This document shows positions 6,974 through 42,500 of a DNA stretch of 62,089 nt, in pieces; position 1 is the first letter of the stretch; the number at the start of each line of letters is the position of its first letter. Below the pieces are notes generated by a model. It searched no databases and was not told the DNA's origin. It was given only the letters and a program-made list of their open reading frames with translations. The stretch spans positions 1 through 62,089 of the forward strand of contig DF237486.1 in NCBI GenBank assembly GCA_000708835.1, given 5' to 3'. This stretch comes from Klebsormidium nitens (taxonomy: Eukaryota; Plantae; Klebsormidiophyceae). The position numbers and the translations under genes were made by a program.

Positions 6974-9779
6974 CTAGTCCAACTCTAAGAAAGCCTTACG
7001 CCGCCTGTTTCTCCGCGAAACAATGAACCGGACCGCCCCGAACAGCTGTCGCACAATGGTCCATAACAGACACACCCCGATGTATGCCCAGAAGCTCCTG
7101 AACGCGGCAATAACCAGAGAAAAGGGAAACATGCCTATTCCCAGCAGGCCAAAGGCGATCCCCAGCCAGGACGGCTTCCCCTGAAGTGTCGCTCGGACGG
7201 ACGGCCACAACGTCCGCACGGCCGTCGCCCCGGCAATCCCATAGGGCCACAGTTTGATGCCGAGCAGCTTGAACTTCCCAAGAGCTTTGCCAGCGCCAGG
7301 ACGAAGACAGCGATACCGCAGACGTTGAGGACGCGCGTTAAGACATTGAGCAGGTTTTCGAACCACAGGTCGTTGTCGACCTCCTGCTGAACGTACGAAA
7401 GAAACNNNNNNNNNNNNNNNNNNNNNNNNNNNNNNNNNNNNNNNNNNNNNNNNNNNNNNNNNNNNNNNNNNNNNNNNNNNNNNNNNNNNNNNNNNNNNNN
7501 NNNNNNNNNNNNNNNNNNNNNNNNNNNNNNNNNNNNNNNNNNNNNNNNNNNNNNNNNNNNNNNNNNNNNNNNNNNNNNNNNNNNNNNNNNNNNNNNNNNN
7601 NNNNNNNNNNNNNNNNNNNNNNNNNNNNNNNNNNNNNNNNNNNNNNNNNNNNNNNNNNNNNNNNNNNNNNNNNNNNNNNNNNNNNNNNNNNNNNNNNNNN
7701 NNNNNNNNNNNNNNNNNNNNNNNNNNNNNNNNNNNNNNNNNNNNNNNNNNNNNNNNNNNNNNNNNNNNNNNNNNNNNNNNNNNNNNNNNNNNNNNNNNNN
7801 NNNNNNNNNNNNNNNNNNNNNNNNNNNNNNNNNNNNNNNNNNNNNNNNNNNNNNNNNNNNNNNNNNNNNNNNNNNNNNNNNNNNNNNNNNNNNNNNNNNN
7901 NNNNNNNNNNNNNNNNNNNNNNNNNNNNNNNNNNNNNNNNNNNNNNNNNNNNNNNNNNNNNNNNNNNNNNNNNNNNNNNNNNNNNNNNNNNNNNNNNNNN
8001 NNNNNNNNNNNNNNNNNNNNNNNNNNNNNNNNGCTGAACGTACGAAAGAAACGGCTGGGCAAGTCCCTCTTCACGGTCATCGACGGTCTCCTTTGCAGCC
8101 TTCGCCTGGAGTCGAGACGGCCTCTGGTGCGGCACAATCTTCAACCGGGCACCCTGTGCCGAAGCGCACAGCTCTGTCAGCTTCGAGCACAGACTCTGCG
8201 CCGCCCGTGCATTCCCAGCAAACCATTCCCTCCTAAGGTGGATCACAAGCTCGGCGGAGTTCTCGCTTCTGGCTAGAAAGCGGGCGGCAGCGGCAACACT
8301 CTCAGGAAAGAAGGGGCAGTCGAGCTCCAGGCTTCGTAGGTACCTGCTCTGCTGCAGCGCCGTTGAATCCAGAATGCTTCCAGCATCAGGGTTGCTCAGA
8401 AGTGGACGCGAGCCAAAATCCCTCTGTTGAAAGGACAGGGAGCCCACACCGCATTCCCCCAGCAGCTCGCACAACTCGGACAGCTCTGACGGAGACATCT
8501 GGCAGTTGCGGAAAGCAAGGCGAAGCTTGGCTGGCGATTCCTGGAGATACTCTCGCATGTCGTCAGAGAGCCGGCCACTGGATGTTATGCGCATTCTTTC
8601 GAAGACAACGGTTGAGGCCGCCATCTAGGGTCTGACACTGCCCTTGCGCAGCCACTCAGGCCGGCCACTTGTCATTGCAATTTCGCTTGCGTGCTGAAGA
8701 AGCGTCAGGATCTCCTCGTCGAACCAGCGGCAAGGTGCTTCTGAGCCCTCGTATTCGAAGAAGCGAGACTCCCTTGTGTAATCAAGAAGAGATTGCTCCG
8801 GGTCATACACGAAGTCATGTCCTTGCTCGAGCAGGCTCTTCGGATTGAAGCCCTTCAAGAATCTGCCTTTCCACCCTGGATACAAGCCATTTATCAGCAG
8901 GTTTGCTTGGATCGTGCAACTCACGGCCAAGATTCTTAGGAGACTGACCACGTGATGTAGAGGGAAAGGAGGGTCACTGTCGCCGTCCATTTTGAGGTCC
9001 ACTTTGAATCCTGCTGCTGAGAGTCCAAGGACGCATGCTGCCACAAACTCTGGGGACAACTTTGCGGTCCCACAAAAGTCAAGGGTAACAGCAGCCTTTC
9101 CAGTATCTTTTTGATAAGCAATGCCTTTCTTGCGGAGGTTTGCAAGCAGCCCCTTGAATGAGCCAACAGGATCTCTCAGCAAGTGCAGCAGAGGTTGAAT
9201 AAACGACTGCATTGAGGATAAAAACCGCGGGATGCGCTTGACTTGCTCGCTGAACCAGGCTATGCAGGTTTCTACGAGGTATCTGATTGGACCCCAAGAG
9301 TCAGGGAAGACTTTGTGGCACCGCAAACACGCGTAAGTGGCCAGGGAAAGCATGTCACCTCCCATGGAAGGGAGGTTATCCCATAGGAGGGCAAGGAGCA
9401 GGGGATTTGAAACCAAGTTAGGGTAGCCATGGGCCGTCTGACCAAGGACACCGTTCCACGAGCTGGGAGCTTGCTGCATGAAACTGAGGTTCATGGTGTG
9501 CAGAATCTTTGCCATGCTCCCTACTTGATATGAAAATTGCTGCGAACCAGAGTTGAGTCGTTCTAGAAGGCGTAGCAGCTGCTTTTCTGTGAGATGCAGG
9601 GCTTGCATGGCGCGCAGGTTCAAATCCTGCCACAGCTCCGGCTCTCTCAGCGCGTCTCGATGGCTCTTGTCCACCAGCTCCATTTGCAAGCGGTCCTGCA
9701 GACTGATGTCTTTCAAGACGATTCGAAGTACATCCCTGGGAAGCGCGGACAGCGCCCTAGCTGCCGCCATGCGCTCCAT
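6974..9779 (-). pseudogene. F-box/LRR-like/TM family, copy 1 (disrupted)
   Basis: F-box LPRDVLRIVLKDISLQDRLQMELVDKSHRDALREPELW; highly similar to copy 3 throughout. In-frame TAG at 8625-8627 (GSVRP*MAASTVVF vs GSVRPRIAAPTVVF). After collapsing the duplicated gap flanks, a frameshift near 7285 moves the TM tail into another frame. Confidence 0.8.
7406..8032. other. Assembly gap with duplicated flanks (20 bp)
   Basis: gctgaacgtacgaaagaaac at 7386-7405 and at 8033-8052. Confidence 0.9.
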
Positions 9780-16768: not shown

Positions 16769-18862
16769 ATGGCAGCTAGCTCGTTGGAGCTCAAGATGGA
16801 GGGCGCTGCTGGAAGCATGCCGCTTGCGGCGCTGCCTAAGGATGTCCTGCGCATCATCCTGAAGAAGCTCAGTCTGGAGGACCGCTTGCGCGTGGAGCTG
16901 GTTGACAAGAGCCACCGAGACATGATGAGGGATCGGGAGCTCTGGCAGGAGCTGAACCTTGGCGCCATGCAGGCACTGAGCATCACAGAAGGCCAGCTAC
17001 TTCGCCTGTTGGGAAGGATTGATGCTGGATTTGAGCAGATCTTCCCGGAGCTAGAGAGCATGGCAGGCACACTGAAAGACATAGCCGAGGAGTCTTTGAA
17101 ACACATCCGCGGCCCGCTTGTGCAGAATTTGGATTCATTCAGGCTGGATGTGTCCTACTTTGGAGCAGACATGGTTTCTGCTGGCGCGCGCTACTTCTCT
17201 CGGCTCCGTCAATTGGTCCCTGAGGCCTGGGGTCCATGCAGACTGGTCGTGGAGACTTGCACAGCCTGGTTCGCCGACCAAGTGGACCGCCTGTTTGTAT
17301 AATTTTCTTGGGTCTACCGGCTTCTCCTGGCCTGTCTGAAACTGCTCCTTCGTCCATCCGAAACCCTTTAAAAGCTGGTTTCTCAGCTCCTGCGAGATCC
17401 AAAGTTTGCTAAGAAAAGTTCTGCCAAGATCCAAATCAGCTTGGACGTTTCAGGAGCAGCAAAGCTGTCACCGCACTACTTGGCAGCCTGCATCATTGCA
17501 ATCTCAGCAGCGGGATACAGGGTCGATTTCAAGATGGCAGGAGAGAGGGATCCTCTGTTCCCTCTCATTCACATGCTTGATCTTCTCGGTTTCCTGGCGT
17601 CAGATTGTTGGATTCAGGTGAACATGCTGGTTTCTGGTCAGTACATTCGGAGGACCAACTTCCTCAAAGGATTCAACCCTGAGGGGCTGGAGGGGACGGC
17701 GATCGACCCTGAATTTGATCCTATGCGGTTATTTGCTGTGACCCTCTACAAAAACTCCCGCTTCTGTGACATCACCACTGCATCAAAGACCGTCTCCCGT
17801 GATTTAGAGGAGAAGGTCTGGAGGCTTGTCGAGCGCAGACTCGAAATTGCAAAGGCAGCAGGCGTGCCATCTGAGTTCCGCAAGGGCTGCTTGAAACCCA
17901 GGATTGTAGCCTCGACCGTGGTCTTTGAGAACATGGCAATCCATGCGGAGAGCAAGCTCTTCGAAGAGATCCGGGACTTCCTGAACGAGTCACCCTCCAA
18001 GCTGCGCCTCGTGTTCCGTCACTGCCTTCTCCTTCCGGCCGAGTTCCGCTCCCTGTGCACGCTGTTAGGGGAATGCGGAGCAGGGTTCGTTTCCTTTCAG
18101 CAGTTCGCTTTCCCGTTAGGCAGACTGTGCAACCCCCAAACCGAAGACGCCGTTTTGAGTTCAGTGGCCCTTCAGAAGAGCGGGAACCTTCAGAGCCTGG
18201 AGCTCGACTGTCCGCTCGTGGTGGCAGACCTGGATTCCGCCGCCCAGTTCCTGGACCGGAGCGAGAGTGCCGCCAGGCTCGTGATCCATCTGCGAACGGA
18301 ATTCTTCTCAACGGGCGCGGAAACAACGCAGCTGTTCTTCAAGAAGCTCCAGGAGCTGTGCGCGTCCGAGCGGGGTGCCCGGGTGACGGTTGTGCAGCAC
18401 CGGCGGGGTGCGCGCGCGAGCGAGACGGTCGAGAGCGCGCGCGCGGGGAGCAGCGACGCATTCTCGCCCATCCAGGACGAGATCAGCACGGTCGTCTGGT
18501 ACGAGAAGCTGCTGACTTGCGTGGATAAAGTCCTGTATGTATACACCGCGGTGGATCTTGTCCTGGCCCTGGCGTTCCTCTTCGGGGTCAAGCTGTTCGG
18601 CTATCGGCTGCAGCCGACGAACTTGGCGACCGGTTTGTCGGGTTCGTGGGGCGTCTGGCATCTGTGGCGCCCTGTGCGGGCCACGATTCAGGGGAGGCGG
18701 GACTGGGTCGGAATCGCAGGAGGTCTCTTTCTCTCCGGACTTCTTCCGATCTCTCCACTTGTGATTGCGTTCAAGGCCTTTTGGGCGTACATAGCAATCT
18801 TCCTCGTGCGCACGGTCCTGTGGCAGGTCGGCAGGGCAATTATTAGAGCATTTGCTTCGTAG
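16769..18862 (+). pseudogene. F-box/LRR-like/TM family, copy 4 (two in-frame stops; possibly rescued by splicing)
   Basis: F-box LPKDVLRIILKKLSLEDRLRVELVDKSHRDMMRDRELW. TAA at 17300-17302 and at 17369-17371; otherwise collinear with copy 3 in one frame to the end. Confidence 0.72.
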
Positions 18863-19868
18863 TCTTTCAAATCAGGATAGTCTTTTCTCAAAAGACGAAG
18901 TCACTCTGGCTGGAAAGGCTGTAAAGAGTTGAGATTCTTAGAGACTTAATGCAAACGCCTAGTCAGTAGGGTCGGACGGGAGATCTCTTGTAAGTGCGGG
19001 TGGCGCTTTGAGGCCATACAAGTAGCCCTCATAAAAGCGCTTCCAAAGTTCGAAGATGGCGGATCGACCACACTTCTTCAACTTCGCGTGATAAAGGATA
19101 GCTTTTAATCACTTGACGCATGATTTTCTGTCTTTATTACTTGCTTCATTTCTTTGAACCTGCTCAGTTCAAACTGCATCCACAGTGTCGAATACGATCA
19201 TAAAGCACTTGATGGAGGCTCAACATCTGAGTCTTTACTGCACGAAATTGGATTTTAAATCGAATATCATGCGACGGTGGGCTCGTGTAAGACGCGTGAT
19301 ATGCATAAGGATGGCTATATATATATGTTCAGGAGAGCAGGCTGATTGTCTTTGGACGTTATATATATTCTAAATCATCCACCCTCACCGGCCGCGCATT
19401 ATGCCAATTTGCGACCGAGCTCGCACTGTCACTTACGGCATGTTAGATGTTCAGTTCTAAGCTATAGTCGAGCTGGGCCGGATGATTTAGCCTCTTTAGT
19501 ATGGGGCAAGCTGATCAATCTAGAAAGAAAGAAGCACGGACGTATCGATCATGTGCACGTCTTGTGTAACATCTCAGGACTCTTATTGGAAGCACCGGAA
19601 TTTGGCCATGCCGCATTACGAGATGCAAGGGCTCAAGTCAAAGCGCCGTTGCAATCAAGAGATCCTCCCCCGCTGGCTTAAACATTTGACTTGCCAGGAA
19701 ACGCCTGGGCCCAAGTTGGTGAAACCGCTTGATACAGTAATTTAAGTTCTTAGTGTCTACTCAAACACAGACCCACCTGTAGCACGATTGATACGCAGGC
19801 TACCGACGACGGTTAGCAGACACATATGCTCCTCCAATATGGTCGGAACTTCTAAGGCGAACAGCGGC

Positions 19869-22800
19869 TTAACTTAGGCTCGCAAGGATTGTCCTGCCTA
19901 ACGCCGCACTCACGACCATGGGCACGGCGTTGCCCACTTGTCTATAACAGCTCTCAATCTGGTCGTCAGAAGTACCAGCGGCCGCAAACTTGAAATTCTC
20001 GGGGAAGGTTTGCAGCAAAGCGTTCTCGCGGGGGCTAGCTAACCGGTTATAGGTGTAATGAACGCACGCCCAGTTGGTGTCATTGGCGGTGCATACTACG
20101 GTTGCAGACTGGCCGTCCCGAGGCAACCGGCCCTTCACCCCGCCCCTCGGCCTGCAAGAAGAAAACCAAGGACACTTAGCTGATGCGTTCAAAGGGCTCT
20201 GTGGAACTCCGACGTTCAGCAACAGAAGCCAGCGTGAGCCGCAACAATCTTCCGCAACAGCTTTGCACATGCATTGTGATGTGGCACCCCGTAATGACAT
20301 GACGAGCTTGTACGCTAAATGCAGTAGGTCCTGCACCACGTTTGAACACGAAGCCTGGTACGCCCGTGGGAATAAACTTGAGCGGTCGGCATAAACCTGC
20401 GACTCACTTTGTCGGCTCTTTCCCCCGATCCCTAGCCCCGTGGCTCTGGAGGTCTTTCGGGAGGTCTTTGTCCTTCTGCCCAGGGCCCAGCTGATCCCAC
20501 TGCGCATGCCGTTTCGACCTTCCCGGGTCCACGTGAAACACCTTGTGGTTGAAAAGGAAGGAGCCACCGGGCAATCTCTGCAGGAGAGGAGCACACTAAA
20601 AGCTTGACAGCTTGCGGAGGGTGGTGTTGACGCTTGCCGGTACTTCCCCGCGAAAATACAGTGATAAGGTCTGCAGGAGCATCACTCTCCAGCCCTTGTC
20701 GGATCTGATTTTAGCTTTCTGACGACTTCGCTTTGCAGGACCATTTGTTTATTAAAACCCTCCCTCGCTGGGTCCTTCTCTGCTCAGCAGGGAAATCTTC
20801 GCACGTGCCTTAAACATTAACACGACAGATGAACGACAGCTATACAACACGCAACAGTAGCAGAGCAATCCCTTTTGATTACTCGCTCAGATCGAGCCAA
20901 TCAGCGGTCCTGTATAGAGTGCGCTCACCATCCTCTCTGCCGTCGCCCCTTTCGGCAGGTGCCCAATTGCCTGGTACACCGTCACTGCCGGCAGCAGATC
21001 TGGAGTCTCCGCCGCCCGCTGCCGCTGCAAACAGCAGCTACACCCGATTGTCCGCCAGTCCCCCTCCGAGCCCGTCAGATCCGGTGGCCGTTTGTTCACC
21101 ACCGCGTAACCTTCTCGCGTCCGGAAGAAAGCCGCGGGGTGCGGCTCCGGCGCCTGCTCCTCGGATCGCTTCCGCTTGAGCGCCCCGCTGGGCTGCCCAA
21201 GCACCGGTTTCCCGACTAGCTTTCCGAGGGGGCCGCTGCTCCTAATGTTTTCGACTGCGCCGCCGGGCTGCCCAAATGCTGATTTTCCGACTGCCATCCC
21301 AGTTAGGCCGCTGCTCCCACTCTTTTTGAGCGCCCCGCTGTGCTGCCCAAATTCGAGATTCCCGATTGCCCCCCCAGTTCCGTCTCCCACCCCGGGCTGC
21401 CCAATTACCAACGCCCCGACTGCTCCCCCGGTTGTGTCGCCACCCGCGGCATCTTCGAGCGCCCCGCTGGGCTGCTCGGTTGCGGATCTCCCGACTCCGC
21501 CCCCGGTTGTAGTGCCGTTCCCAGTACCCCGCAGACCGCCCGTTTTCACAGGCACGCTCGGGCCCGGCCCGTCACCGGAGGCCCTGTTACCGCTCCCGCC
21601 GCGGTTTTCTGCACTGGCGGACGCATTCTCTGGCAACCCACCGTCCGGAGAAGAACGCTCCGTGTCCAACACCGCCCCGTCCGAAGGGGAGGTACTTAGC
21701 CGGACTGTCCGCAGCTCTGTCGCCTCAGGCATTGCGGACCTGTTCTCATCCGTCGGAGGTTGTTCTGCCACGGACGCAATCTTGTCTGCCCCAGTTGCCC
21801 CTGTCTTCGGGGCCTTCATCGTGATAAGGATGCCCATTTTGGGCTTCTTCTTCTGGGGCTTCTTCTTGGGGGCCTTCTTTCCCTTCACTGTTTTGCGGTT
21901 CTTGGCTGCTTGGGGAGCGGACGGGTCGGGCAGCTCGAGGAAGCAGTGCTTAAACAACCCCAGGGGTTTGGTGGGCCGGCCAAAGGCGCGGTGAGTGGGT
22001 ACGGCCACTTGGGGTAGCTTCTCTCCTGCAGAAGAGAGAGTGAGTCAGATACTGCCTGCGGTACTAAACGACACAATCTTGTAACTGCTGATTTACAGCC
22101 TAAAGACCGAACAAAAGGCTTTGTCCAACAGGCATACAGTGAGCTACACAGAACATGGGCGCAGATGACAGCAGGCAACACAGCAGGAGCCCAAAAGTCT
22201 CCTTCCGCTTTTTCCACTTTTAGGGGAGACATGTCGATGTTTGCACAGCCTCACCGCAGAGATCGATCTCCGAAGTGCAACGCAACACTCCTATGAAAGG
22301 GGACTTTCTACAGTGCTCACCTATCTGCGCTGCGCACAAGAAGGTGCGGAACCGGTTCTGCGGAGCGCCGAACAGGGCCGCCAGCAGGATCTGCCACCTC
22401 GTCTGGTAGCCCAACCGCACCAGCGCGCGGGTGATGGCGACCCCAACGGGTTCATGCAAGCGCTTATCAAGCTGCACAGGACTTTCGCAAAGTGATCAGA
22501 GACGTGTGGGACCAGAGAAAACCAAAATATCATAGCGATTCTTGGTTTACAAGTCTGGAGCAGTTGAACCCGATTTCGCCCGGAACTCTCGTCGTCTTCT
22601 ACCAATTAACGGTGCACCAATCAGGTTTGGGACTGACGAGAGTCAGACACACAGATGACCTTGCCGCCGAAAACCAACAAACTCTCTGCCGTGCAATTTG
22701 GCATGTCCTGCCCTCACTGCAATTGTCAAGATGATCAGCTAATGTGAATTCACAAGAACGGCAACGAGACAAAGCGCAGCCAGACATGCTTGCCTGCACA

Positions 22801-25800
22801 TGGAAGAACCTGCAGAGCAGGTTGCTGCTCGGCCTGCTGCCTCACAAGTTCAGCTATAATCAATCCACAGTGTCTTCAACGGGCAGATTAGAAGGGGGCC
22901 TCACCAGCGTCAGGACCTCAATGACCTCCTCGACGATGATGTATCGTGGTTGCAGAAACTCGACGATCCGCAGAAAGTCTTGGAAGAACATACGGCCCGC
23001 CGGCAGCTCCTCCGCCGGCTCGACTGGGGGCTCGGGATCCTCCCCCGAGGACGTCGAGTTCCGCCGTATTGATGTCTTGCTGTTCCGGGGGTTGGCTCCG
23101 CTGAAGCTCTGGCAAGGGAGGCCGGCGGTGATCATCTCGACGTCGCCCGGGCCAGGCGCGTTGGGGTCTCTGCGACTGCAAAACGGGGCGCACCGCAAGG
23201 CGTTCATATAGATCCAGAGATTGGAGATATCGTTGAGGAAGGACTTAGAGAGGATAAACAGGCGATGAATTGGATCGGTATGCACCCTTGCAGGACAACC
23301 GACATGTTTGCACAAGACACAGTCGGACTCATTCTGACTGCTTTCGAAGCACATGTCCAGGCTCTTGGTACTCTGCAATAAGATCTTGAATTACATCTTA
23401 ATCCCGTGAACCTTGACTTGAGCTTCAGTCCATCAGCAATAGAAGGCACAAGTTTCTCAGAAGAAATCCGCCAACGGGGAACCTGCAAGCTGCGCTCCAA
23501 CAGCACGAATGGGCTGTTACGCCAGCGCTTGCGCAAATTGGGTCAATGGGCGCCAGCCGCTTACCTGGTAATGCGATCACAGAAGTCGGCCATGCTCTCT
23601 CTAAACACGCCGATTTTCGGGATGTTCTTCACGCACGTGGAGAGGGGATCCTGCAGGTGACAACGGTGACCGGCAAAGAATGTCAACAACCAGACCCACG
23701 ATCGGGCTGATGAAAGGGACGCCTGGGTGCCTCTAGGGCGGATGCCATCTCAGAAGCGATTCTTGGACGAAGATGAAGTCACTCAACAAACAATTAGATC
23801 AATCTTTGTAGCATCAGGCACGCCAGATGATGATCTACGCCGGCACTGAAGTTGGAGAAACGGCCAGAATATGCAAGCTATAAAGTTGGAAGTAGGTGCC
23901 CGCCTTCTCTGTGTCCACAGCGTAAGTGGGCACGATCTTATGGGCCCCAGGTCCACCGCCAATACTGGCATAGGAACACCCTAACCCGAGCGCCCCGGTT
24001 CCCGCACAAAGGTCCAAGTTACGCAACACCCCTGGGGGCGTTTTGGGTTTGGGGGCGGGCAGTCTCGGGGGCTCGTTGAAATAGATACTTTCCGGGGGTG
24101 TACACATCTGGGCACTTCTGGTGTCTGATGGGGCAGTCAGCAGCTGGGGGGGTAGGGGGTGCACAGGAGAGGGTGCGGCGGGCAACTGAAGGGGAGCGCC
24201 GCTGCTATCAGAAGGGCGGAGAGAGAGCTCGAGGGGCGCGGAGCTAGAAGAGGTGACAGCAGCTTGAGCATGCCCCAGTTGCGTTTGGAGTGGTGTCAGG
24301 GCCTGATCGGAGGCCCACTCCAGGGCAAAGCTTGGGGCGCTGGTTAGCAGGTGAGGCGATCGAAGCGCTGCCTCCCTTCTCCAGGGGGGTAGAGCTGCCG
24401 CGTTGATAAGTATGATGGGGGACTTTGGAACTGGGGGTGCCGGCAGCGGGGGCAAGGCTTCAGGGGTAGTTTGGGGCCACGCCCCGTAGGTCAGCCGCAG
24501 CGGTTCGACGAATTCCGTAACTGGAGAAGCGGGGCTTTTGGACGAGGGAGCCGGCGAGGGGGAACTAGAATCAGGGCACGACGGCGCGGGGCTCCGGGGG
24601 GCAGAGAAAGTCGGAGAAATTGCGATTTGTGTGGCGCCTTCCAGCTGGCCCGCTGATTTCGTCCCTTGGATTCGTTGACGGTCCCTGGGGGTTGCGGAGG
24701 TTTCCAGGACCGGCTCAGGGGACCTGTCGAGAGCCACGAAGTCGTGGGTCTCGCTGCAGTACTTGTACGGGACGTAAACAACTGATGTGCCAGCTGTCGC
24801 TATCAGCGGCCTCGTTGCCCCTTCCCCCTCTCCTTCACAGAACAGGGGAGCCCCCGTCAACGGTTCCGGGGCTTGCTCTCCCCAGAGCACTTCAACCTTC
24901 TTCATGATCCGATCTGCCCGCCAAAGGGCCGTGGTGTGGATCCCCAAGAACCGCTCTTGCACAGGCCACTCTAGTTCTTGCGCTGCGTCGCCCCCAGCCG
25001 GCCTCTCGGGAGGCTTCAGAATCGTCTCCTCCACCATTAAAAGCTTCCGGCCCTTGATCCAGACGGCCGGATTCGCCTCCGCCGGCCTCGCTTCTCCCCT
25101 GGCTTCCGCGCTGGCCCGGGTATCGCCCCTCACTGACCCCTTCCTACTCTCGTTCACACTGAGCACCGCATCGACAACCACGATCGTTTCGGGCTCTTCT
25201 TTCAATTGACTTGAGTCCCCTCGAAGCAGAACCCCCTCACCCACTTGCACCCTGAACAGGCCCCCGTCGTCTCTCCGCAGTTCGACACTGTGCCGGGCCC
25301 TGCCCCAAGCGTTCTTCCCGAATGCAGTCTCCAGAGCTGTTTTGTCCAGACCCTCCAGGTCGGGGGACGCGTGCCAGGTGGCATCCTTTGGCGCCTCCTT
25401 CCATGGCCGGCCCTCACGGGAATAGAAGCTACTGTCCAGGTCCAGCCGGAGCAGCTCTGCCTCCCACGGGTCATCCATGTCCACAGGTGGCAGCACCTCA
25501 AGCTCCTGGAAATAGAATACAAAGATAGGCCCGTTGAAACGCTCTCAATGTGTGAAGCTAGTGATTGGGGCACTGATCGCCAACTCGTGGAAAGTCGTCA
25601 CATCTGATCTAGGAGCTACTACTCAAGGAATTTCGAATCACATGTGTCCTTGAGTTTGGCGTTGTGTATGGAATTAGCAATGGCACAAGTGCCAACAACG
25701 TCCAGTCAGAGTCCGTGGAGCATCCTCTATCAAAGCCTAGAATGCAGTCAAAGGAAACAGATTGCCTCTCTGAAAACCAAGTCGGCCTCAGAAAGGCACC

Positions 25801-26612
25801 AAAATTGCCGCCTTCTGTAATAATTCGCCTGAGAGGTTCACCTACCTTGGCATGCTCAGTCAGNNNNNNNNNNNNNNNNNNNNNNNNNNNNNNNNNNNNN
25901 NNNNNNNNNNNNNNNNNNNNNNNNNNNNNNNNNNNNNNNNNNNNNNNNNNNNNNNNNNNNNNNNNNNNNNNNNNNNNNNNNNNNNNNNNNNNNNNNNNNN
26001 NNNNNNNNNNNNNNNNNNNNNNNNNNNNNNNNNNNNNNNNNNNNNNNNNNNNNNNNNNNNNNNNNNNNNNNNNNNNNNNNNNNNNNNNNNNNNNNNNNNN
26101 NNNNNNNNNNNNNNNNNNNNNNNNNNNNNNNNNNNNNNNNNNNNNNNNNNNNNNNNNNNNNNNNNNNNNNNNNNNNNNNNNNNNNNNNNNNNNNNNNNNN
26201 NNNNNNNNNNNNNNNNNNNNNNNNNNNNNNNNNNNNNNNNNNNNNNNNNNNNNNNNNNNNNNNNNNNNNNNNNNNNNNNNNNNNNNNNNNNNNNNNNNNN
26301 NNNNNNNNNNNNNNNNNNNNNNNNAATTCGCCTGAGAGGTTCACCTACCTTGGCATGCTCAGTCAGAAACAAAGCGGTCCCCAGCAAGGCATCGCCAGCG
26401 GGGGTCCCTTCAGGCCTGTCAACTAGCCCCCTGCCGCTGCTTCTCTCCCCACCCTCCCTTGGCTTCTGAACATGCACTCTATTCCTCTTCTTCGTTACGG
26501 GAAAGTACTTCGTGATCCGCTTCTGGTCCTGTGAGACCACCATGGGCTGTGAAATCTGCGAAACGGGCGTGGTGCATGGCTCCCCACTGACCTGGGTGCC
26601 TGGGCTCTCCAT
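19869..26612 (-). CDS. Atypical C5-cytosine DNA methyltransferase of the DNMT1/MET1 superfamily, with BAH domain; multi-exon
   Basis: Motif I LDLCAGTGALG (~24030); motifs II-III AVDTEK/DPLSTCVKNIPKIGVF; motif IV GDVEMITAGLPCQSFSGAN (~23110); motif VI PRYIIVEEV; motif VIII LGYQTRWQILLAALFGAPQNRFR followed by AAQIGEKLPQVAVPTHRAF; TRD-like LFNHKVFH and GRLPRDG; motifs IX-X SPRENALLQTFP and YRQVGNAVP. A BAH-like segment lies at ~24850-25260. The start codon is uncertain. Confidence 0.9.
21177..21480 (-). repeat. Coding tandem repeat (~75 bp / 25 aa, ~5 degenerate units) inside the MTase insertion
   Basis: Units begin (E/G)Q(P/H)(S/G)GA: EQPSGALEDAAGG, GQPGVGDG, GQHSGALKKSGSS, GQPGGAVENIRSS, GQPSGALKRKRS. 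Confidence 0.8.
25864..26324. other. Assembly gap with duplicated flanks (42 bp)
   Basis: 25822-25863 is identical to 26325-26366. Confidence 0.9.
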
Positions 26613-27421
26613 CTCTAGTTCAGACGAAAGAAGGCCTGCCACTTTACCCTTCCAATTCTTCCCAGTCCTTGATTTTACCTAAGCCCGTCATTGGGACGGA
26701 GATGCGGAGACACAGGGACACCCTGACCCAGGAGGAAAAGTCTTCGTCATGGAATCAGGAATCGATCTGAAACTGCTGCTTGACAGCATTGTTCTGCTGG
26801 TTGCCCCTTGAAGTAACATTGCTTGCAGTTAGCACTGAATCTCTGCTCAGCAATTTTTAACCCCTTCGAGCGGGTGGTAAACTGTAGGACTGTAAGTTTC
26901 GATCACGTTGCACACAGCAAACCTTGTGGACAACCGAACTGGGCAGTCACACGACTTGTGTTTACCTGCACTCTTCAACTTCAACTCTTAATCATAACAT
27001 GGGCTGAACCACAATCACCTACCTACGTCTCCCTGCAAGCGCCATAGCGCCTTCATGGCGCCATCGCCATAGCAGCTAGCCATGAATGGACCCCGTGTGA
27101 TTCTGCAACGCAGGTGACGGGAAGAAGCTTGCTGAATTCGAATTCCTACAACGCCTCAGGACCCGTTAGCTTCGACGGCGGCCATCTCCTGTCGATCGGA
27201 GTCGAGGGCAACTTAGTTTATTGTCGTTAAAAGTATACGACGACGAAGTCCGATGCGCTTACGCGCCGAAGATGCCAAAATCGGAATTGCTTGCATTGTG
27301 CAAATGTGCTGCTTCCCAACATCTCTTCGTCTAGAGCCTGAGCCTGAGGCACAGGTGGATTGTGAAAATCTTGAGCAAGTTGAGGTGAAGTTTCAGCCGC
27401 CTCTGCACCAGGTGTGCAGCC

Positions 27422-30400
27422 ATGGCGACGTGTAGCCACATCGCCTTCCAGCTGTCTCGCTGCCCTCTGCACACCCCACTTCATTCAACGCAAAAGGGGG
27501 CACTCTCGTCTGAGAAAACTTGGTCATGCGGCCCCGGGCCCGGCGCGCATCTTGGGAGCGGAATCTCTTCTTGGAATGGAGGACACGTTAGTCAAAAGTT
27601 GCTCCGTAAACCCTCTACAACAGGGTTGCGAAAACGCATGGGGCCGTCTTGCAATGCTGTGGGCAGCCTGCGTGATCAAGCGACACAAAGGGCGGAGGCG
27701 AATACTCCGGCAGGGAAAGAGGACGAGAGCTGGCTGCAAAAGGTGGCGCGCAGGATACAGGAGGGACAGGTGAGGGGCCCAGCGGGTTTTGGTAATGGTG
27801 AAGTGGGTGGAGCTGCCTTTTGTAGCGGTTCAGGAGGGGACTGCCTATGTGAACTGGAGGAATGTGCATTCTTATCAATAAAAATGTTGTAAAATACCTG
27901 CATATCCTTCAAGCAATTCTCAGCAAAAGCTGGGTTTGCAATCGACAGGTTGACTCACTCCTGTTCTAGAGGGTTCAATATTGAATGCTGCCCCATCAGA
28001 GCTACTGATGGTACAGTGAAACCACAGTCGTATGCGCACATTTTACAGACTGCCGCTTCATCACTCTTCTTCCTTTTGGGCACAGTAAAACACCGCTACC
28101 TTGCCACCGGTTGACCTGAAAATATTGCAACGCTCACAATTATGCAGCAAGCGCAAGCCACAATTGCAATGCAGCGGACTCAGCAATGCTTTTTGCAATG
28201 CTGTGTGCACTTTCGACTTCTCCCTGGTCGCCTTGCCCAGGGGCCTGTTGATACTGGCGAGCGTTGTGGGAGTCCATGCTATCATGCCATTGTTCTTCAA
28301 AAAGCCACAATTTGTGTATCCATTGCAAATCTCACCACTCATTTCTCAATCGCTTGTCCAGGAGCCTGTTGAGGCAGTCCAGGCCCTCCGTGAGTCCTCG
28401 GCCGCCTCCCTCCTGTCCCTCCGCATGCCAACCACGCGCGACGAGCAGTGGCGCTTCACCGACATTCGGAAGCTCCTTCTGACCGCGGACGTCTGGCCTG
28501 CCCCCCCTCACTTCCCCTCCGTTGACATCTCCCAATGCACCCTCCCCGAGGCAGACCAAACTCGCATTGTTCTTGTAGACGGAGTCATAGCCCCCTCGTT
28601 ATCACATCTGAATGGCCTTCTGGATGGGATCACTGTCGAGCCCCTCGCAACTAGCGCGGCGAGGGAAACTGCAGGGCAGCACCTGGGGTCGCTCGCGGGG
28701 CAGGGCCAGGGGGGGCTCGACGTGTTTTCCGCGCTGAACGGCGCTGCGGCGTCGGATGTTTTGTTGGTCAACATTCCGGACGGGAAGCAGTTGGATAAGC
28801 CGTTGCACATCGTGTATCATAGTACGGGGTCAGGGGACGGGACGACCCGGCTGGCGAGCCCACGGTTGCTGGTAGTGGCGGGGAAACATGCGGAGGTAGA
28901 GATTGTGGAGGAGTTCACCGGCGGGGGTGGGGCATACTGGACGAACGCACTGGCGGAGTTTGTACTGGGAGAGCACTCAAAGGTGAGCCCTGGAGTGGCT
29001 GGGTCTCAACGTTTATTGCCAAACTGTTAGTTTCATGTTGGCGTTCATTTTCAACTCTGTAGTTTATGCTTGTGCAGCTCCTTAGGCCCCGTTTTGAGCA
29101 AAACGTCGTAAGATGACCACCATTGCACAGTGCCCAGATCACTTTCATAAGGATTCAATGTATCATGTGCCTCAAGCTGTGCCGCACCAGTGGTGCTGTG
29201 CATAGGTGCTTCTACGCCATTATTGCATGGCCTCACTGAGCCCTGTTAGTCGGGACACTTCTATCTGCACGGCTGTTGTATTGCAGACTATACGCTCTCC
29301 GGTGTTCATTGCATTCCAGAAACTTCCACACCTTTTAAATTGTGCAAAAAGACAAGCTGTTGCAACTCAGCACCTCTTCTCACATCGCCGCTGGTTCGTA
29401 ATGGCCAGGTTTCGCATACATACATCCAGCAGCAGGCAAAGGAGGGCATTCATACCAAGCGGACCTATGTTGCACTGGCGACAAAAGCAGAATACCGTGC
29501 CACAGAAACAGGGTAAGCGGGTTGTCGGTGAAAGATTGTGTCTTTGACCGTATTGTGCCAATCCAACACCTTCTAGAGAGCTTCTCTTCACCCCTGTCTT
29601 CACTTTTTTATCTTTCCTCTGTGTTTGTGTTTTAGTAAGTTGTGCTTGATATGAGAAGCGTAACTAGACGTATACTGCTATCTTTGGAAAGTTCAGCGCT
29701 ATGGCAACAGTTTTGAGTCAAGCTGTCACATCGATTTCTTCATGATTGAACACGCCTTCGTACTTTTGTGGATCTATGCTGAAGTAAGACACTAAGTCGT
29801 ACCCTCTGATTTGGAGAAATCAGCAGGCGCAACCGGCAGGGGAAACCTTGCAATCAGCCCTTAAGGCCAGGCTCGGCTATGAAGTTCCTTTCTTCACAGT
29901 ATGCAGTGCCTCCTTCAAGCACACCCCTCTCTCGTCTCCTCATGATTGTGCTTCTCAGCCTCGATAAGCCCGTTCTCAGCTTCGGGGCCTTTCCAGAGGT
30001 TTCCACAAAGCTGCAATGGCCTTCAAGCGCTTGTATGACATGGATTTCAATCCTGGACGTCAGAGAGAACTTCGAAGATCGGCTCAGACGGCATCTTTTC
30101 TCCAAATGTTTGCGACGTCATCTTCAACCTGTGCTCCTTCCCAGTGTTCTTCCTTGAACAGTTCACCGGTGTGCTTTCAGGTGGGGCGGACGGCTGACCC
30201 GCCACAACCTGCACATCCAGCAGCTTGGCCCCGAGACCGTGACGGACGTGGCGACGTTTTACCTGGCGGGGCGCTCGCAGTTGCACGACCTCCACAGCAG
30301 CCTGTATCTCGACTACCCTCGAGGCCAGAGTAACCAGCTGCACAAGTGCATCGTCACGCACGCCACCGGTGAGGGGCCGGTAAATGTGTTTTACCAGAAA

Positions 30401-39500: not shown

Positions 39501-42500
39501 GTAAGTTCTCCCGACAGTATCATGCACCAATGGCTTTTTAAAAATGCCTCCAGTAACCTTGTCGTCGCGTGGATCCTCAGCAGACATCTACTCCACGCCC
39601 CAAGAGCATCTGTGCTTACCATACATTATTGGAAGCTCCTCTGCACTGCTTACACGGATGTAACTTTTCGGCCAAGCAGAGCCCTTTCAAAGGATCGGCC
39701 AAACCTTCCAAGACCAAGACAGCAACCGCAAAACCCATCGTGCCTTTGGAACAGCAACACCTTAAGGATTGCCATAGTTTTGCCCTAGTCCAAGGTGATG
39801 ATTCCGATTATCTAGGCATCATCCAATGCCCATTTGCGGCCACAAGGGTTCAATAATCCAAAAAGGCCACCGGAATTTCAAAAACTGTCATAATCAGCCT
39901 CAAAACGCGTTTCCAGACAAACACTACAGCAGTCAGATTCTGGTCGGAAGCACCATTGATTTCCACCTTCCTATGCTGGATTGTTGGAGAATGAATCCAG
40001 ATCAAGTCATTTGGAATCGTCACTACTGTGTACGGCTGTGTTTGTGATGTCAGCGGCCGGTGGCGGAGCGCGAGCTGGATGACGGGGAGGTGACGGAGTA
40101 CCGCAAGAAGGAGGACGAGGACAACGTGTTCACGCTGGGGAACAAGGACCGCACCAAGGACAAGGGCAAGCAGAAGGTGAGAAACGGGAAACAGGAACAA
40201 GAGGACAACGATGAGAAGAGGGCTAATGGTGTTTCTCATCCCTGGCAACCAGAGGGCCTTTCGTGGGTCAAAGGGCACAAGCAACGGCGTTGGGGGACCT
40301 ACGTGTAAAGCATTGGTTTTTAAGTCCACTTTACTTTGAGAAGGTGAACTTGTTGACATAGGTTTTAGGCACCAGCTCACGACATACGGAAGGCCTCGTC
40401 ACTTCTAAAAGTTCTTGACTTTTTCCAAATCAAAAAGGGGCCGGCATGCCCGGCGTTTCGGAACGTGCATGCTACAAGGGGCGTGTGCTTTGTCAGCTGC
40501 TCACCGAACGTGCGGAATCAAACCAATTGCCCGAATGCTTGGGCAAAGGAACAACGGACCGTTGGTAGGAAGTTCCGTAACTTAGAAAACATGCGGCGAA
40601 TCCAATCCGATCGAATTGAGCCCGCCGCAATTTGAAGACCGAGACGATCGTCCCACGGGGCGACCTTGCCCCGCCTTGTGCCCTGCAGGTGGACGCCGTT
40701 CCGGAGCCCCCTCCCGCCGCAGCCGCCAAGGGCAAGGGCAAGAAGAAGGGCATGACGCTGAGCATCAACGAGTTCATCACCTCCGACGACCCCGATCCGC
40801 CGCTCTCTTTGCGCCCGCAAGGAGCCCCGAGCGCTTCCCGCCCCTTCATCAACGACCCGGGCNNNNNNNNNNNNNNNNNNNNCGACTCGCACGGACCGCC
40901 GATGCACGGAACTGCCGATGCACGGACCGCACATGCACGGACCCCCCATGCACGGACCGGTTCCGGTGGTCCACAGGCAGCCCCAAGAGGACTTTCCGGT
41001 AGGAGTTGCTTCCCTTCAGGCTGCGGAAACGTGGGAATGTCGGCTTGGAAACGGGCATTGCCTTCGGTCGGCCTCTCGTCCCTTTTTTGTTTGCTGGAAA
41101 TAATAAAGAAGGAAGGGCCGGATGCAGGGCGCATTGGAAGTCCAAGTAGGCAAGGACCTGTGTCGCACGGTGTCTACTCTGCGGGAGCCCGTGTGGCGGT
41201 AGGTTCGACATCAGACAATGCTTTGTCTTTCGATGATGGGATGCAGCATACTGTGAGCGGTTTTGAAGATCTCCCGCGGTACCCACTTTCACATCGACTT
41301 GTTTCCTTTCTACCCAGGAGCTACACAGGGGCCCTGGCGGGACGGCCACGACTCCAAGCGCCCCTGGGTTCCAAGAGCGGCCCAAAGACCCATTCTCGCT
41401 GGCGCTGGACTCGATCCGTATCCGGGATACGGAGGTGAGGGACCCATTTAAAAGGGGCAACCAGAGGATCTCGAGAAGCTGGGTTCCCTTTTCAAACGCA
41501 AGATTCTGACGCTGTCTTGGCGTCCCAGCCAAATGCTGAATTGTTTCCGGAAAATTACTCACAATTTGCAGAGCGGACGTCGTAGTATCTGGTGCATGTC
41601 GATACTCTGTCAATAGCTCTCTGTGCCGGCAGCACTGTCACACATTCATTGCTTGCAGTCTGGAGCTTTCCATCTGAGGGAGACAGTGATACACATCCTT
41701 TTGCGCTGCAGCCGACGCGGCATCTGGTGCTGGAGGACGTGGACGGTCGTGCGGACGACGAGGAGATTCGGAGCCTGCTGTGGGAGTATGGCATGGTGGA
41801 GGAGATGACGCGCTTCCGGGGCAGGGAAATTGCGTTCGTCACCATGAGGTAAGCGCGCCCGTGAGAAAGCTTTCAGCAGGGAACATGATCAATAGAAGCT
41901 GACGTCAGCGTGAAACTGTGAATAGGCGCAAGCTTTTAGCTTTCCTCCTGTTTCTGACAGGGAGCAGCGGCTTGGTCTTGTTCTGTTCGCAGCCAAGTTG
42001 GCCAGAGGTCGCTGCGTCAGCGTCCGTCTTTACTCGATTTCGTTGGTGCATGCTCAAGTTTGTTATGGATGCCGTCAAAGTCCAGCCATGAAATAAGACA
42101 TTGCCACATGTGCGCTCCAGTAACAGCAGCTCACCTCACGCGCACTGGCGCATCTTGTGAGCATATTTGGCCGAGCGTCTTTCTTCCTGCTGCTTACAGT
42201 CCTGCTAAACTCTTATCGGTGCCACGTGCAGAACGGTCGAGGAGGCCGCCTCCGCCCGGTTACTGCTGCCCAACAGGAGCCTCAAGAACCGCAAGGTCAA
42301 GCTGGACAGCGTCAGCCAGGTCAGCGCCAGCCCCCCTCAGTCGCATTATTGCCCCAGTGAACGCTGTTCTGTTACGCCATGTTGAAACCAAGGGCAGTGC
42401 TCAGAGTCCTGGTTTTCAGGTTACTGCTGCCCGATGGNNNNNNNNNNNNNNNNNNNNNNNNNNNNNNNNNNNNNNNNNNNNNNNNNNNNNNNNNNNNNNN

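Follow-up and report, generated by a model that had tools for sequence, protein, structure and literature searches.

A transcribed and constrained C5-methyltransferase gene of Klebsormidium nitens with a divergent BAH-like domain and a lineage-specific target-recognition region

Introduction

Klebsormidium stands near the base of the lineage leading to land plants. On contig DF237486.1 of K. nitens (assembly GCA_000708835.1), of which we analyzed positions 1 to 62,089 (62,089 nt, hereafter the window), a gene at 19869–26612 carries the motifs of a C5-methyltransferase (MTase). A preliminary description, made from the letters of the window, had placed this gene outside the standard plant set of MET1, chromomethylase (CMT) and DRM enzymes, as a divergent relative of DNMT1/MET1 with one BAH domain and neither a chromodomain nor a visible RFTS. 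This raises the question of what kind of enzyme the gene encodes, and whether it is a working gene at all. We find an intact, transcribed nuclear gene of the Klebsormidium lineage, which probably encodes a long-branch C5 DNA methyltransferase belonging to, or lying adjacent to, the DNMT1/CMT superfamily. From the N- to the C-terminus its product would consist of a disordered region with a motif resembling a PCNA-interacting peptide (PIP) box, one divergent BAH domain, a Pro/Ser linker and C5-MTase motifs I–X.

Results

The MTase gene is transcribed and its reading frame is open

The gene lies on the minus strand, as do all of its features given below, and runs from an ATG at 26612 to a stop at 19869. 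It has eight coding exons, for which 1,307 aa were modelled, and the open reading frame (ORF) is open throughout; the span from stop to ATG of this RNA-based model is exactly the 19869–26612 given earlier. The stretch of the window with the MTase gene is present in 20 public runs from seven studies, and RNA contigs from four runs, each from a different study, were placed on positions 20700–26699. The parts skipped by these contigs end in CT..AC on the plus strand, and the contigs thus represent RNA of the minus-strand gene. Introns 1–6 were read from spliced RNA, with GT/GC..AG ends. Intron 7 (20152–20407, GTGAGT..TTGCAG) is predicted as the best frame-preserving splice pair, and the prediction is supported because tblastn alignments to two orthologues, L001 and L002 (see below), both break at aa 1214. 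The spliced protein could in this way be built from RNA, with introns 1–6 verified and intron 7 predicted and supported by the orthologues.

Coding exon 1 (26349–26612, aa 1–88) starts with the ATG at 26610–26612 and is covered by RNA contigs over 26348–26699 and beyond, the 5′ untranslated region extending at least 340 nt upstream of the exon 1 coding start. An in-frame stop is found 20 codons 5′ of the ATG within this RNA-covered first exon, so that no further 5′ coding exon is possible. Intron 1 (25506–26348, GT..AG) is defined by an RNA joint from 26348 to 25504 that skips 843 bases in all four runs. It holds an entire assembly gap, a run of Ns at 25864–26324 with identical 42-bp flanks (25822–25863 and 26325–26366), which is probably an overlap of contig ends; as the gap lies wholly inside the intron, the coding sequence is unaffected. 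Exon 2 (23904–25505, aa 89–622), which encodes the BAH-like domain, the linker and motifs I–II, is covered over 23903–25504 by one RNA contig per run. Intron 2 (23651–23903, GC..AG, 253 nt) is partly retained: next to the spliced joint, all four runs have a 310-nt unspliced contig of lower depth. Retention adds 22 codons before a stop is reached, ahead of motifs IV–X, and would yield a truncated protein with only the PIP-like motif, the BAH-like domain, the linker and motifs I–II.

RNA joints also define exon 3 (23565–23650, aa 623–651), in the region between motifs II and IV, exon 4 (22905–23175, aa 651–741), with motifs IV and VI, and exon 5 (22321–22471, aa 742–792), with motif VIII; exon 4 is further supported by Pfam PF00145 and by alignment to PDB sequences. 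Exon 6 (20929–22025, aa 792–1157; 1,097 nt) forms one continuous piece of RNA contig in all runs. A loose contig end at 20929 matches 20548–20577, which places intron 6 (GT..AG) at 20578–20928 and exon 7, a conserved part of the target-recognition region, at 20408–20577 (aa 1158–1214). Exon 8 (19869–20151, aa 1214–1307 and the stop) carries motifs IX and X and is supported by Pfam PF00145 and PDB matches.

The gene is conserved in a few relatives and under purifying selection

An exhaustive HMMER search of 1.84 billion representative proteins with exon 2 returned only three fragments, with 70, 48, and 40% identity, all of them exon ORFs of relatives, and word searches with exon 6 (as the exon 6 ORF of L001) and with exon 4 returned only the same kin. 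An exact look-up of the exon 2 ORF gave no entry. The lineage has so far turned up only in K. nitens and a few relatives, presumably Klebsormidium-like. The closer orthologue, L001, is a Logan contig with 70% identity that is syntenic with the window, sharing its divergent SufBD neighbour; L002, a JGI metagenome contig, has about 48% identity. In both, the exons are arranged as in the K. nitens gene, down to the predicted exon 7/8 boundary, and the motif variants are shared.

Ka/Ks in the catalytic exons was 0.06–0.18 against L001 and 0.11–0.28 against L002. It was 0.28 and 0.25, respectively, in the BAH-like part, 0.36 against L001 in the linker (Ks being saturated against L002), 0.46 and 0.51 in the insert of the target-recognition region, and 0.12–0.18 in the conserved segment that follows this insert (aa 1076–1157). 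The exon 5 value against L001 was discounted as an artefact of an overlapping wrong-frame alignment; 47 of the 50 residues of this exon are identical between the two. As the gene is both expressed and constrained, it is not a pseudogene. An unexpressed pseudogene was one outcome that would have undone the preliminary description, and the open ORF, the RNA contigs and the purifying selection all speak against it.

The catalytic motifs are complete but carry unusual residues

Pfam PF00145 was found above cut-off on three exon ORFs, covering motifs IV–VI, VIII, and IX–X, and no other Pfam family was found. A profile of 17 canonical DNMT1/MET1 catalytic domains matched the spliced protein with 102.8 bits in three collinear blocks. 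These are aa 580–684, which spans motifs I to IV in 105 residues against 102 profile positions, aa 717–803, with motifs VI–VIII and an LPxxPxPxH segment, and aa 1218–1306, with GRLxxDG and motifs IX–X. The C5-MTase motifs thus occur in order on the minus strand, as first described. Motif I, DLCAGTGA (23991–24014; S-adenosylmethionine binding), has Cys588 in place of the usual Phe. Motif IV, GLPCQSF (23103–23123), contains Cys672, and motif VI, VEEV (22923–22934), contains E733–E734, the PDB alignment setting MENV of ZMET2 opposite VEEV. Motif VIII, QNRFR (22346–22360), is in exon 5, and motifs IX, RENALLQTFP (20001–20030), and X, RQVGNAVP (19920–19943), are in exon 8. The order I, IV, VI, VIII, IX, X along the coding sequence is not circularly permuted (VI–X before I–V) as in DRM, and because the canonical order I–X is kept we conclude that the MTase is not a DRM.

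Motifs I–III had been described as spliced straight to motif IV, and this is seen in the RNA contigs of four runs, each from a separate study, in which the exon 3/exon 4 junction reads DFCDRIT followed by SRRDPNAPGPGDVEMITAGLPCQ. No chromodomain was found between motifs II and IV; exons 2, 3, and 4 are joined in RNA and there is no Pfam Chromo match. The spacing of motifs I–IV is of the DNMT1 type, as the 105-residue block shows, which leaves no room for a chromodomain and agrees with the absence claimed at the outset.

We compared individual residues in a 46-row alignment. Motif VI reads ENV in 17 of 17 DNMT1-type and 25 of 25 bacterial rows and EEV in all three Klebsormidium-type sequences. 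The same three sequences have Cys for the Phe of DxFxGxGG (motif I) and LPCQ(S/T) for PPCQG. In the family, PCQ keeps its Cys and motif VI its first Glu, and QxRxR, the RE in motif IX and the GNAVP in motif X are likewise unchanged.

With three near-invariant positions altered in three of three orthologues, the protein could be an impaired or inactive regulatory paralogue, a pseudoenzyme like DNMT3L that keeps the fold and the contacts with chromatin and PCNA and has lost methylation. The retained-intron isoform, which would encode the N-terminal half only, would suit such a role. Yet the unchanged catalytic residues listed above have been kept over a Ks greater than 1, the lowest Ka/Ks values (0.06–0.18) fall precisely in the motif exons, and L002 keeps the canonical GxGG in motif I. 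We regard a pseudoenzyme as improbable.

The MTase lies outside the canonical DNMT1/MET1 clade on a long branch

To place the catalytic domain, we searched the PDB with profiles of exons 4 and 8 and with the single sequence of exon 5. For exon 4 the scores were 26.6 bits for the CMT ZMET2, 24.7 for DNMT1, 19.9 for MET1, 15 for Dcm-type enzymes, 13 for M.HhaI and 12 for DIM2. For exon 5 they were 16.7 (ZMET2), 16.4 (DNMT1), and 17.5 (MET1) with no other matches, and for exon 8 they were 33.9 (ZMET2), 21.4 (DNMT1), 23.7 (MET1), and 19.5–21.9 (bacterial enzymes). All matches of exons 4 and 5 at E ≤ 0.1, and likewise the top 26–27 of exon 8, are CMT, DNMT1 or MET1, and bacterial methylases enter the lists from E = 0.002 (exon 8) and E = 0.17 (exon 4). 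No DNMT3, DRM, DNMT2 or DNMT5 structure appeared among the PDB matches of exons 4, 5, and 8. In these sequence comparisons a CMT was the best-scoring solved structure for exons 4 and 8, by a small margin of 2–10 bits. Scores of 17–34 bits against solved CMT, MET1 and DNMT1 are far below what we would expect of an orthologue.

To obtain a reference set, a DNA pattern for motif IV of DNMT1/MET1 was run against metagenome contigs. This gave 103 loci, 17 of them with long intron-free ORFs in which the catalytic domain is complete. A Pfam scan of 21 ORFs showed canonical RFD, BAH and sometimes CXXC domains. A corresponding DNA pattern for motif IV of CMT gave no matches in viral contigs. A maximum likelihood tree (LG+C20 PMSF; 46 rows, 310 columns) of the three Klebsormidium-type sequences, the 17 DNMT1/MET1 sequences and 26 bacterial MTases is a three-way star in which the 17 DNMT1/MET1 form a 100/100 clade that excludes the MTase family, the Klebsormidium stem being 2.56 substitutions/site long. 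Of the earlier proposal that the enzyme stands outside MET1, CMT and DRM, several parts therefore hold: it falls outside the 100/100 DNMT1/MET1 clade, is not a DRM and has no chromodomain. Its membership in the superfamily rests on weak scores, and the tree, which comprises DNMT1/MET1 and bacterial MTases only, separates the family from DNMT1/MET1 within a star. We conclude that the MTase is no MET1 orthologue and probably no orthologue of a canonical CMT either; a possible sister relationship to the chromomethylases is favored by the C-lobe scores (CMT 34 vs. MET1 24 bits) and by the BAH plus MTase layout.

The star can also be cited in favor of another reading, that of an orphan DNMT outside the DNMT1/CMT superfamily, acquired from a bacterium or virus and later supplied with introns and a eukaryotic N-terminal extension. 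Six orphan DNMTs have been counted in K. nitens (PMC12344493, Table S1), and the best database matches of the motif IX–X exon are bacterial MTases of about 310 aa, with up to 47 bits and 44% identity, above any solved eukaryotic enzyme. These bacterial enzymes, however, came from a word search with that same exon; they were chosen from 5.8 billion proteins for one exon, with a length window favoring whole bacterial enzymes, and we read their higher C-lobe scores as selection bias rather than gene transfer. Over motifs I–VIII the DNMT1-type ORFs reach 25–42 bits against 5–23 for the selected bacteria. The motif I–IV spacing, GDVEM..PCQ.FSG and a BAH at the N-terminus are features of eukaryotic DNMT1/CMT enzymes, and seven introns in the coding region together with conserved synteny point the same way. 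Such a transfer seems to us no likelier than a pseudoenzyme, and thus doubtful.

The N-terminus holds a PIP-like motif and a single BAH-like domain

The motif QKRITKYF (26502–26525, aa 30–37), followed by the basic PVTKKRNR, matches Q..[ILMV]..[FYW][FYW], a pattern that occurs nowhere else in the protein, and likely is a PCNA-clamp-binding motif. The orthologues read QKRITNFF-PKTKKRNR (L001) and LGRITDFY-KQIKPRKKRK (L002), so RIT(K/N/D)(Y/F)(F/Y) and a basic tail are kept in three orthologues while the N-terminus around them is weakly conserved. The full PIP-box pattern Q-x-x-[ILMV]-x-x-[FY]-[FY], conserved and in a disordered region, is present in the window and in L001. In L002, at 9469–9700, a stop separates the apparent start MESQGPQ... 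from LGRITDFY, which is read in another frame; this break could come from an indel in the assembly, from a small intron or from the use of another start.

A divergent BAH-like beta domain lies at 24735–25292 (about aa 160–345). Among its named neighbours by ESM-Atlas features, 27 of 30 are BAH clusters (scores 0.90–0.92, of low recognition value). We used an AlphaFold model of aa 155–345 (191 aa), whose pLDDT of 45 gives the fold low confidence; a larger model of aa 89–360 had a pLDDT of 30 and was not used. The best 50 Foldseek matches of this model are all BAH domains (ORC1, DNMT1, SHL/EBS, AIPP3, PBRM1, BAHCC1, MET1, ZMET2, DIM2), with E from 7e-3. With VIA-align, which works independently of Foldseek, against 48,161 chains the top 19 are all BAH domains (Z 5.9–8.2, 82–140 aligned residues), followed by small Tudor/SH3-like barrels with Z ≤ 5.8 and about 55–80 aligned residues.

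Sequence methods did not detect the domain. Pfam found no BAH in the N-terminus, hidden Markov models (HMMs) of DNMT1 BAH1 and BAH2 gave negative scores, hhalign gave probabilities of 0.2–3%, and Pfam and PDB phmmer searches with the 553-aa exon 2 ORF gave no match. A pooled-BAH hhalign alignment was in register with the BAH landmarks (P = 0.005), and the BAH1-versus-BAH2 control reached 98%. Taking the model-based comparisons into account, we think that the N-terminus probably holds a single, very divergent BAH. The one BAH of the preliminary description is accordingly upheld by the ESM-Atlas neighbours and the top Foldseek and VIA-align matches, and goes undetected by Pfam, the DNMT1 BAH HMMs and hhalign. 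In place of the two tandem BAH domains of DNMT1/MET1 there is one BAH-like domain and then a 225-aa Pro/Ser/Ala-rich linker (24015–24689, aa 361–585; P 20%, S 13%, A 13%), the long Pro/Ser-rich linker noticed before.

An RFTS was likewise said to be missing, and Pfam DNMT1-RFD gave no match in the MTase at E up to 10. Among the 21 control DNMT1 ORFs scanned, the same search found RFD in the 13 longest (1e-12 to 1e-63), and BAH was readily found; with the in-frame stop ahead of the ATG, the domain cannot be encoded further 5′. No PWWP was found by Pfam in the MTase ORFs.

Two of the reference ORFs, L047 852–6137 and L082 3–3569, have RFD and MTase domains and no Pfam BAH at E ≤ 0.001, while the DNMT1 BAH2 HMM gives 18–21 bits. 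They may be DNMT1 orthologues, with divergent BAH domains, of some protist lineage.

The target-recognition region matches no solved DNMT

Exon 6 begins with the start of the target-recognition region (LPQVAVPTH), continues with a disordered insert that is first Lys-rich and then Gly-rich, and closes with a conserved end containing a CSCC motif. The low-complexity insert (21175–21894, aa 836–1075, about 240 aa) comprises the K-rich KGKKAPKKKPQKKKPK and then a part with 28% G. A 75-nt tandem repeat at 21231–21379 (two copies, 77% match) in the Gly-rich part encodes repeated ...GQPSGALK... units, and the length of the insert varies among the orthologues. The conserved segment (20929–21174, aa 1076–1157), which includes GCSCC and TVYQAIGHLP, has 46 invariant columns in five sequences.

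Searches of the PDB with this segment and exon 7, as single sequences and as profiles, gave no DNMT match. The target-recognition region of DNMT1 (profile positions 241–416) has no counterpart in aa 804–1217 of the MTase, and no relatives of aa 1076–1157 were detected outside the MTase gene family. By eye, TVYQAIGHLP had been likened to the TVRD..DLP segment of DNMT1; this was dropped, as the single-sequence and profile searches of the PDB gave no DNMT. From a region that matches nothing we infer that the enzyme might have a new sequence specificity, as the preliminary description had suggested.

A target-recognition region unlike any DNA-specific one known might instead mean that the enzyme methylates RNA, as DNMT2 and DNMT6 do. 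These RNA-directed enzymes are consistently without companion domains (PMC12344493), whereas the MTase has a BAH-like domain and a PIP-like motif, and no DNMT2 structure is among the PDB matches of exons 4 and 8; an RNA substrate is thus very unlikely. Least credible of all is an ordinary MET1 or CMT with its missing domains in unannotated exons, or an unexpressed pseudogene: no support for it was found beyond a gap at 25864–26324 that could in principle have concealed an exon, the RNA joins 26348 to 25504 across that gap, an in-frame stop precedes the ATG, exons 3 and 4 are spliced without a chromodomain between them, and the MET1 and pseudogene versions are refuted by the 100/100 clade exclusion and by the open, expressed and constrained ORF, respectively.

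Discussion

A divergent enzyme of the DNMT1/CMT type

Taken together, the results favor a C5 DNA methyltransferase of the Klebsormidium lineage in or next to the DNMT1/CMT superfamily, and several points weigh against this reading. The tree is a star with about 2.6 substitutions/site on each stem, and the C-lobe exon scores up to 47 bits against the selected bacterial MTases and 34 against CMT; the placement in the DNMT1/CMT superfamily is therefore not secure. With ENV changed to EEV, the Phe of motif I to Cys and PPCQG to LPCQ(S/T), activity could be altered or lost. Amino acids 804–1217 match no solved DNMT, profiles included. The case for the BAH is weak, resting on a model with pLDDT 45 and machine-learning features, with Pfam, HMMs and hhalign negative. 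The PIP-like motif of L002 has no Gln and is in another frame than the apparent ATG, and by our own rough estimate about one in ten proteins of such length would contain a PIP-type pattern by chance. Finally, the intron 7 splice is predicted and absent from the reads.

If the favored reading is right, the PIP motif would tether the MTase to PCNA at replication forks and the BAH domain would read a histone tail. The MTase domain would then methylate cytosine using Cys672 in PCQ, Glu733 in motif VI and RxR in motif VIII, and the lineage-specific target-recognition region, with its disordered Lys/Gly-rich insert of about 240 aa, would pick the sequence context. A bolder version is that the enzyme represents a new type of replication-coupled MTase, bound straight to PCNA through its own PIP box and to chromatin through a single divergent BAH and acting without RFTS, VIM/UHRF1 input or a chromodomain, in which the target-recognition region and EEV give a context or maintenance logic unlike that of MET1, CMT and DRM. 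We consider this rather unlikely, though less so than the rival explanations above; if true, it could explain part of the non-CG methylation of Klebsormidium.

Relation to known methyltransferases

The closest likeness in layout is to the chromomethylases (CMT3, ZMET2; PDB 4FSX, 4FT4, 9MVY), which have an N-terminal region, one BAH and a C5-MTase domain and no RFTS. A single BAH N-terminal to the MTase domain, as in CMTs, was found here with moderate confidence (pLDDT 45 fold, ESM-Atlas), and the fold matches include the BAH of ZMET2 (Z 6.7). CMTs differ in having a chromodomain between motifs II and IV; the MTase differs in its unrelated target-recognition sequence with the disordered insert, its EEV motif VI and its PIP-like motif. 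With DNMT1/MET1 it shares the motif order, the motif I–IV spacing, GDVEM..PCQ.FSG, LPxxPxPxH following motif VIII and GRLxxDG preceding motif IX, and DNMT1 BAH2 is a fold match of the BAH-like domain (Z 7.3). DNMT1 is described as binding PCNA via an N-terminal PIP box (PMC12474915). Unlike DNMT1/MET1 the MTase lacks an RFTS/RFD and a CXXC, and it has a single BAH. DIM-2 (PDB 9BAP, 9BAZ) is likewise a DNMT1-superfamily paralogue with BAH, and its BAH is a fold match (Z 6.6); its sequence match to exon 4 is 12 bits, and it is described as fungal, with an RFTS-like and two BAH domains (PMC11315935).

Green-algal enzymes that are CMT-like without a chromodomain, or MET1/CMT-related without N-terminal domains, have already been described (Bewick 2017, PMC5410703; Ma 2017, reviewed in PMC9861306). 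Those of Chlorella, Chlamydomonas (DMT4) and Volvox (CMT/MET1-like) resemble the MTase in having a MET1/CMT-related core, in lacking the defining accessory domains and in being unclassifiable in the standard scheme. As described, they are set apart from it by its own BAH, PIP-like motif and target-recognition insert and by its having been found, in our searches, only in Klebsormidium-like algae.

The K. nitens methylome includes plant-like CG, CHG, and CHH methylation (PMC5890265). De Mendoza et al. (2018) found a DNMT repertoire resembling the one in land plants and, as a hallmark of this alga, Gypsy elements carrying DNMT3-like genes (PMC5890265). Sarre et al. (2025) count one DNMT1, one CMT, two DNMT3, three DRM, one ChloroDNMT, one DNMT2 and six orphans in K. 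nitens (PMC12344493, Table S1). ChloroDNMTs and orphan DNMTs resemble the MTase in being confined to the green lineage or to single lineages (PMC12344493); ChloroDNMTs often carry PWWP, which Pfam does not find here, and orphans are mostly without companion domains, whereas the MTase has a BAH-like domain. The gene may be among the ChloroDNMT or orphans of Sarre et al. (2025), and it has probably already been counted in a published DNMT catalogue. Its peptides were not found in the supplements of de Mendoza et al. (2018) and Sarre et al. (2025), and our literature search found no paper that deals with the K. nitens protein or with its PIP-like motif, EEV motif or insert.

To a DNMT repertoire that is commonly summarized as land-plant-like, the MTase adds an expressed and constrained enzyme without a land-plant counterpart, which combines a CMT-like BAH plus MTase layout with a DNMT1-like PIP motif and a target-recognition region resembling nothing known. 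If active, it would be a natural experiment on the swapping of RFTS, chromodomain, PIP and BAH modules in DNMT1/CMT evolution and a test of how far the ENV motif tolerates change, and it might methylate with a new specificity; if inactive, it would exemplify a DNMT-derived regulator in an alga.

Neighbouring genes and assembly gaps

Upstream of the MTase gene, head-to-head with it and about 1 kb from its likely transcription start, lies a SufD/SufBD-type Fe-S assembly gene (28101–29030, plus strand). The SufBD neighbour on L001 (4730–7789) shows Pfam SUFBD_core and SufBD_N on called genes. On L002 a retrotransposon integrase (17670–19098; Pfam rve, Integrase_H2C2) lies just downstream of the MTase orthologue, unlike in the window. 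The window contains four runs of Ns, of which three (7406–8032, 25864–26324, and 42438–43072) have identical flanks of 20, 42, and 36 bp, respectively. This suggests that the scaffolder put estimated gaps between contig ends that overlap, and gaps of the same type may occur across the rest of the assembly.

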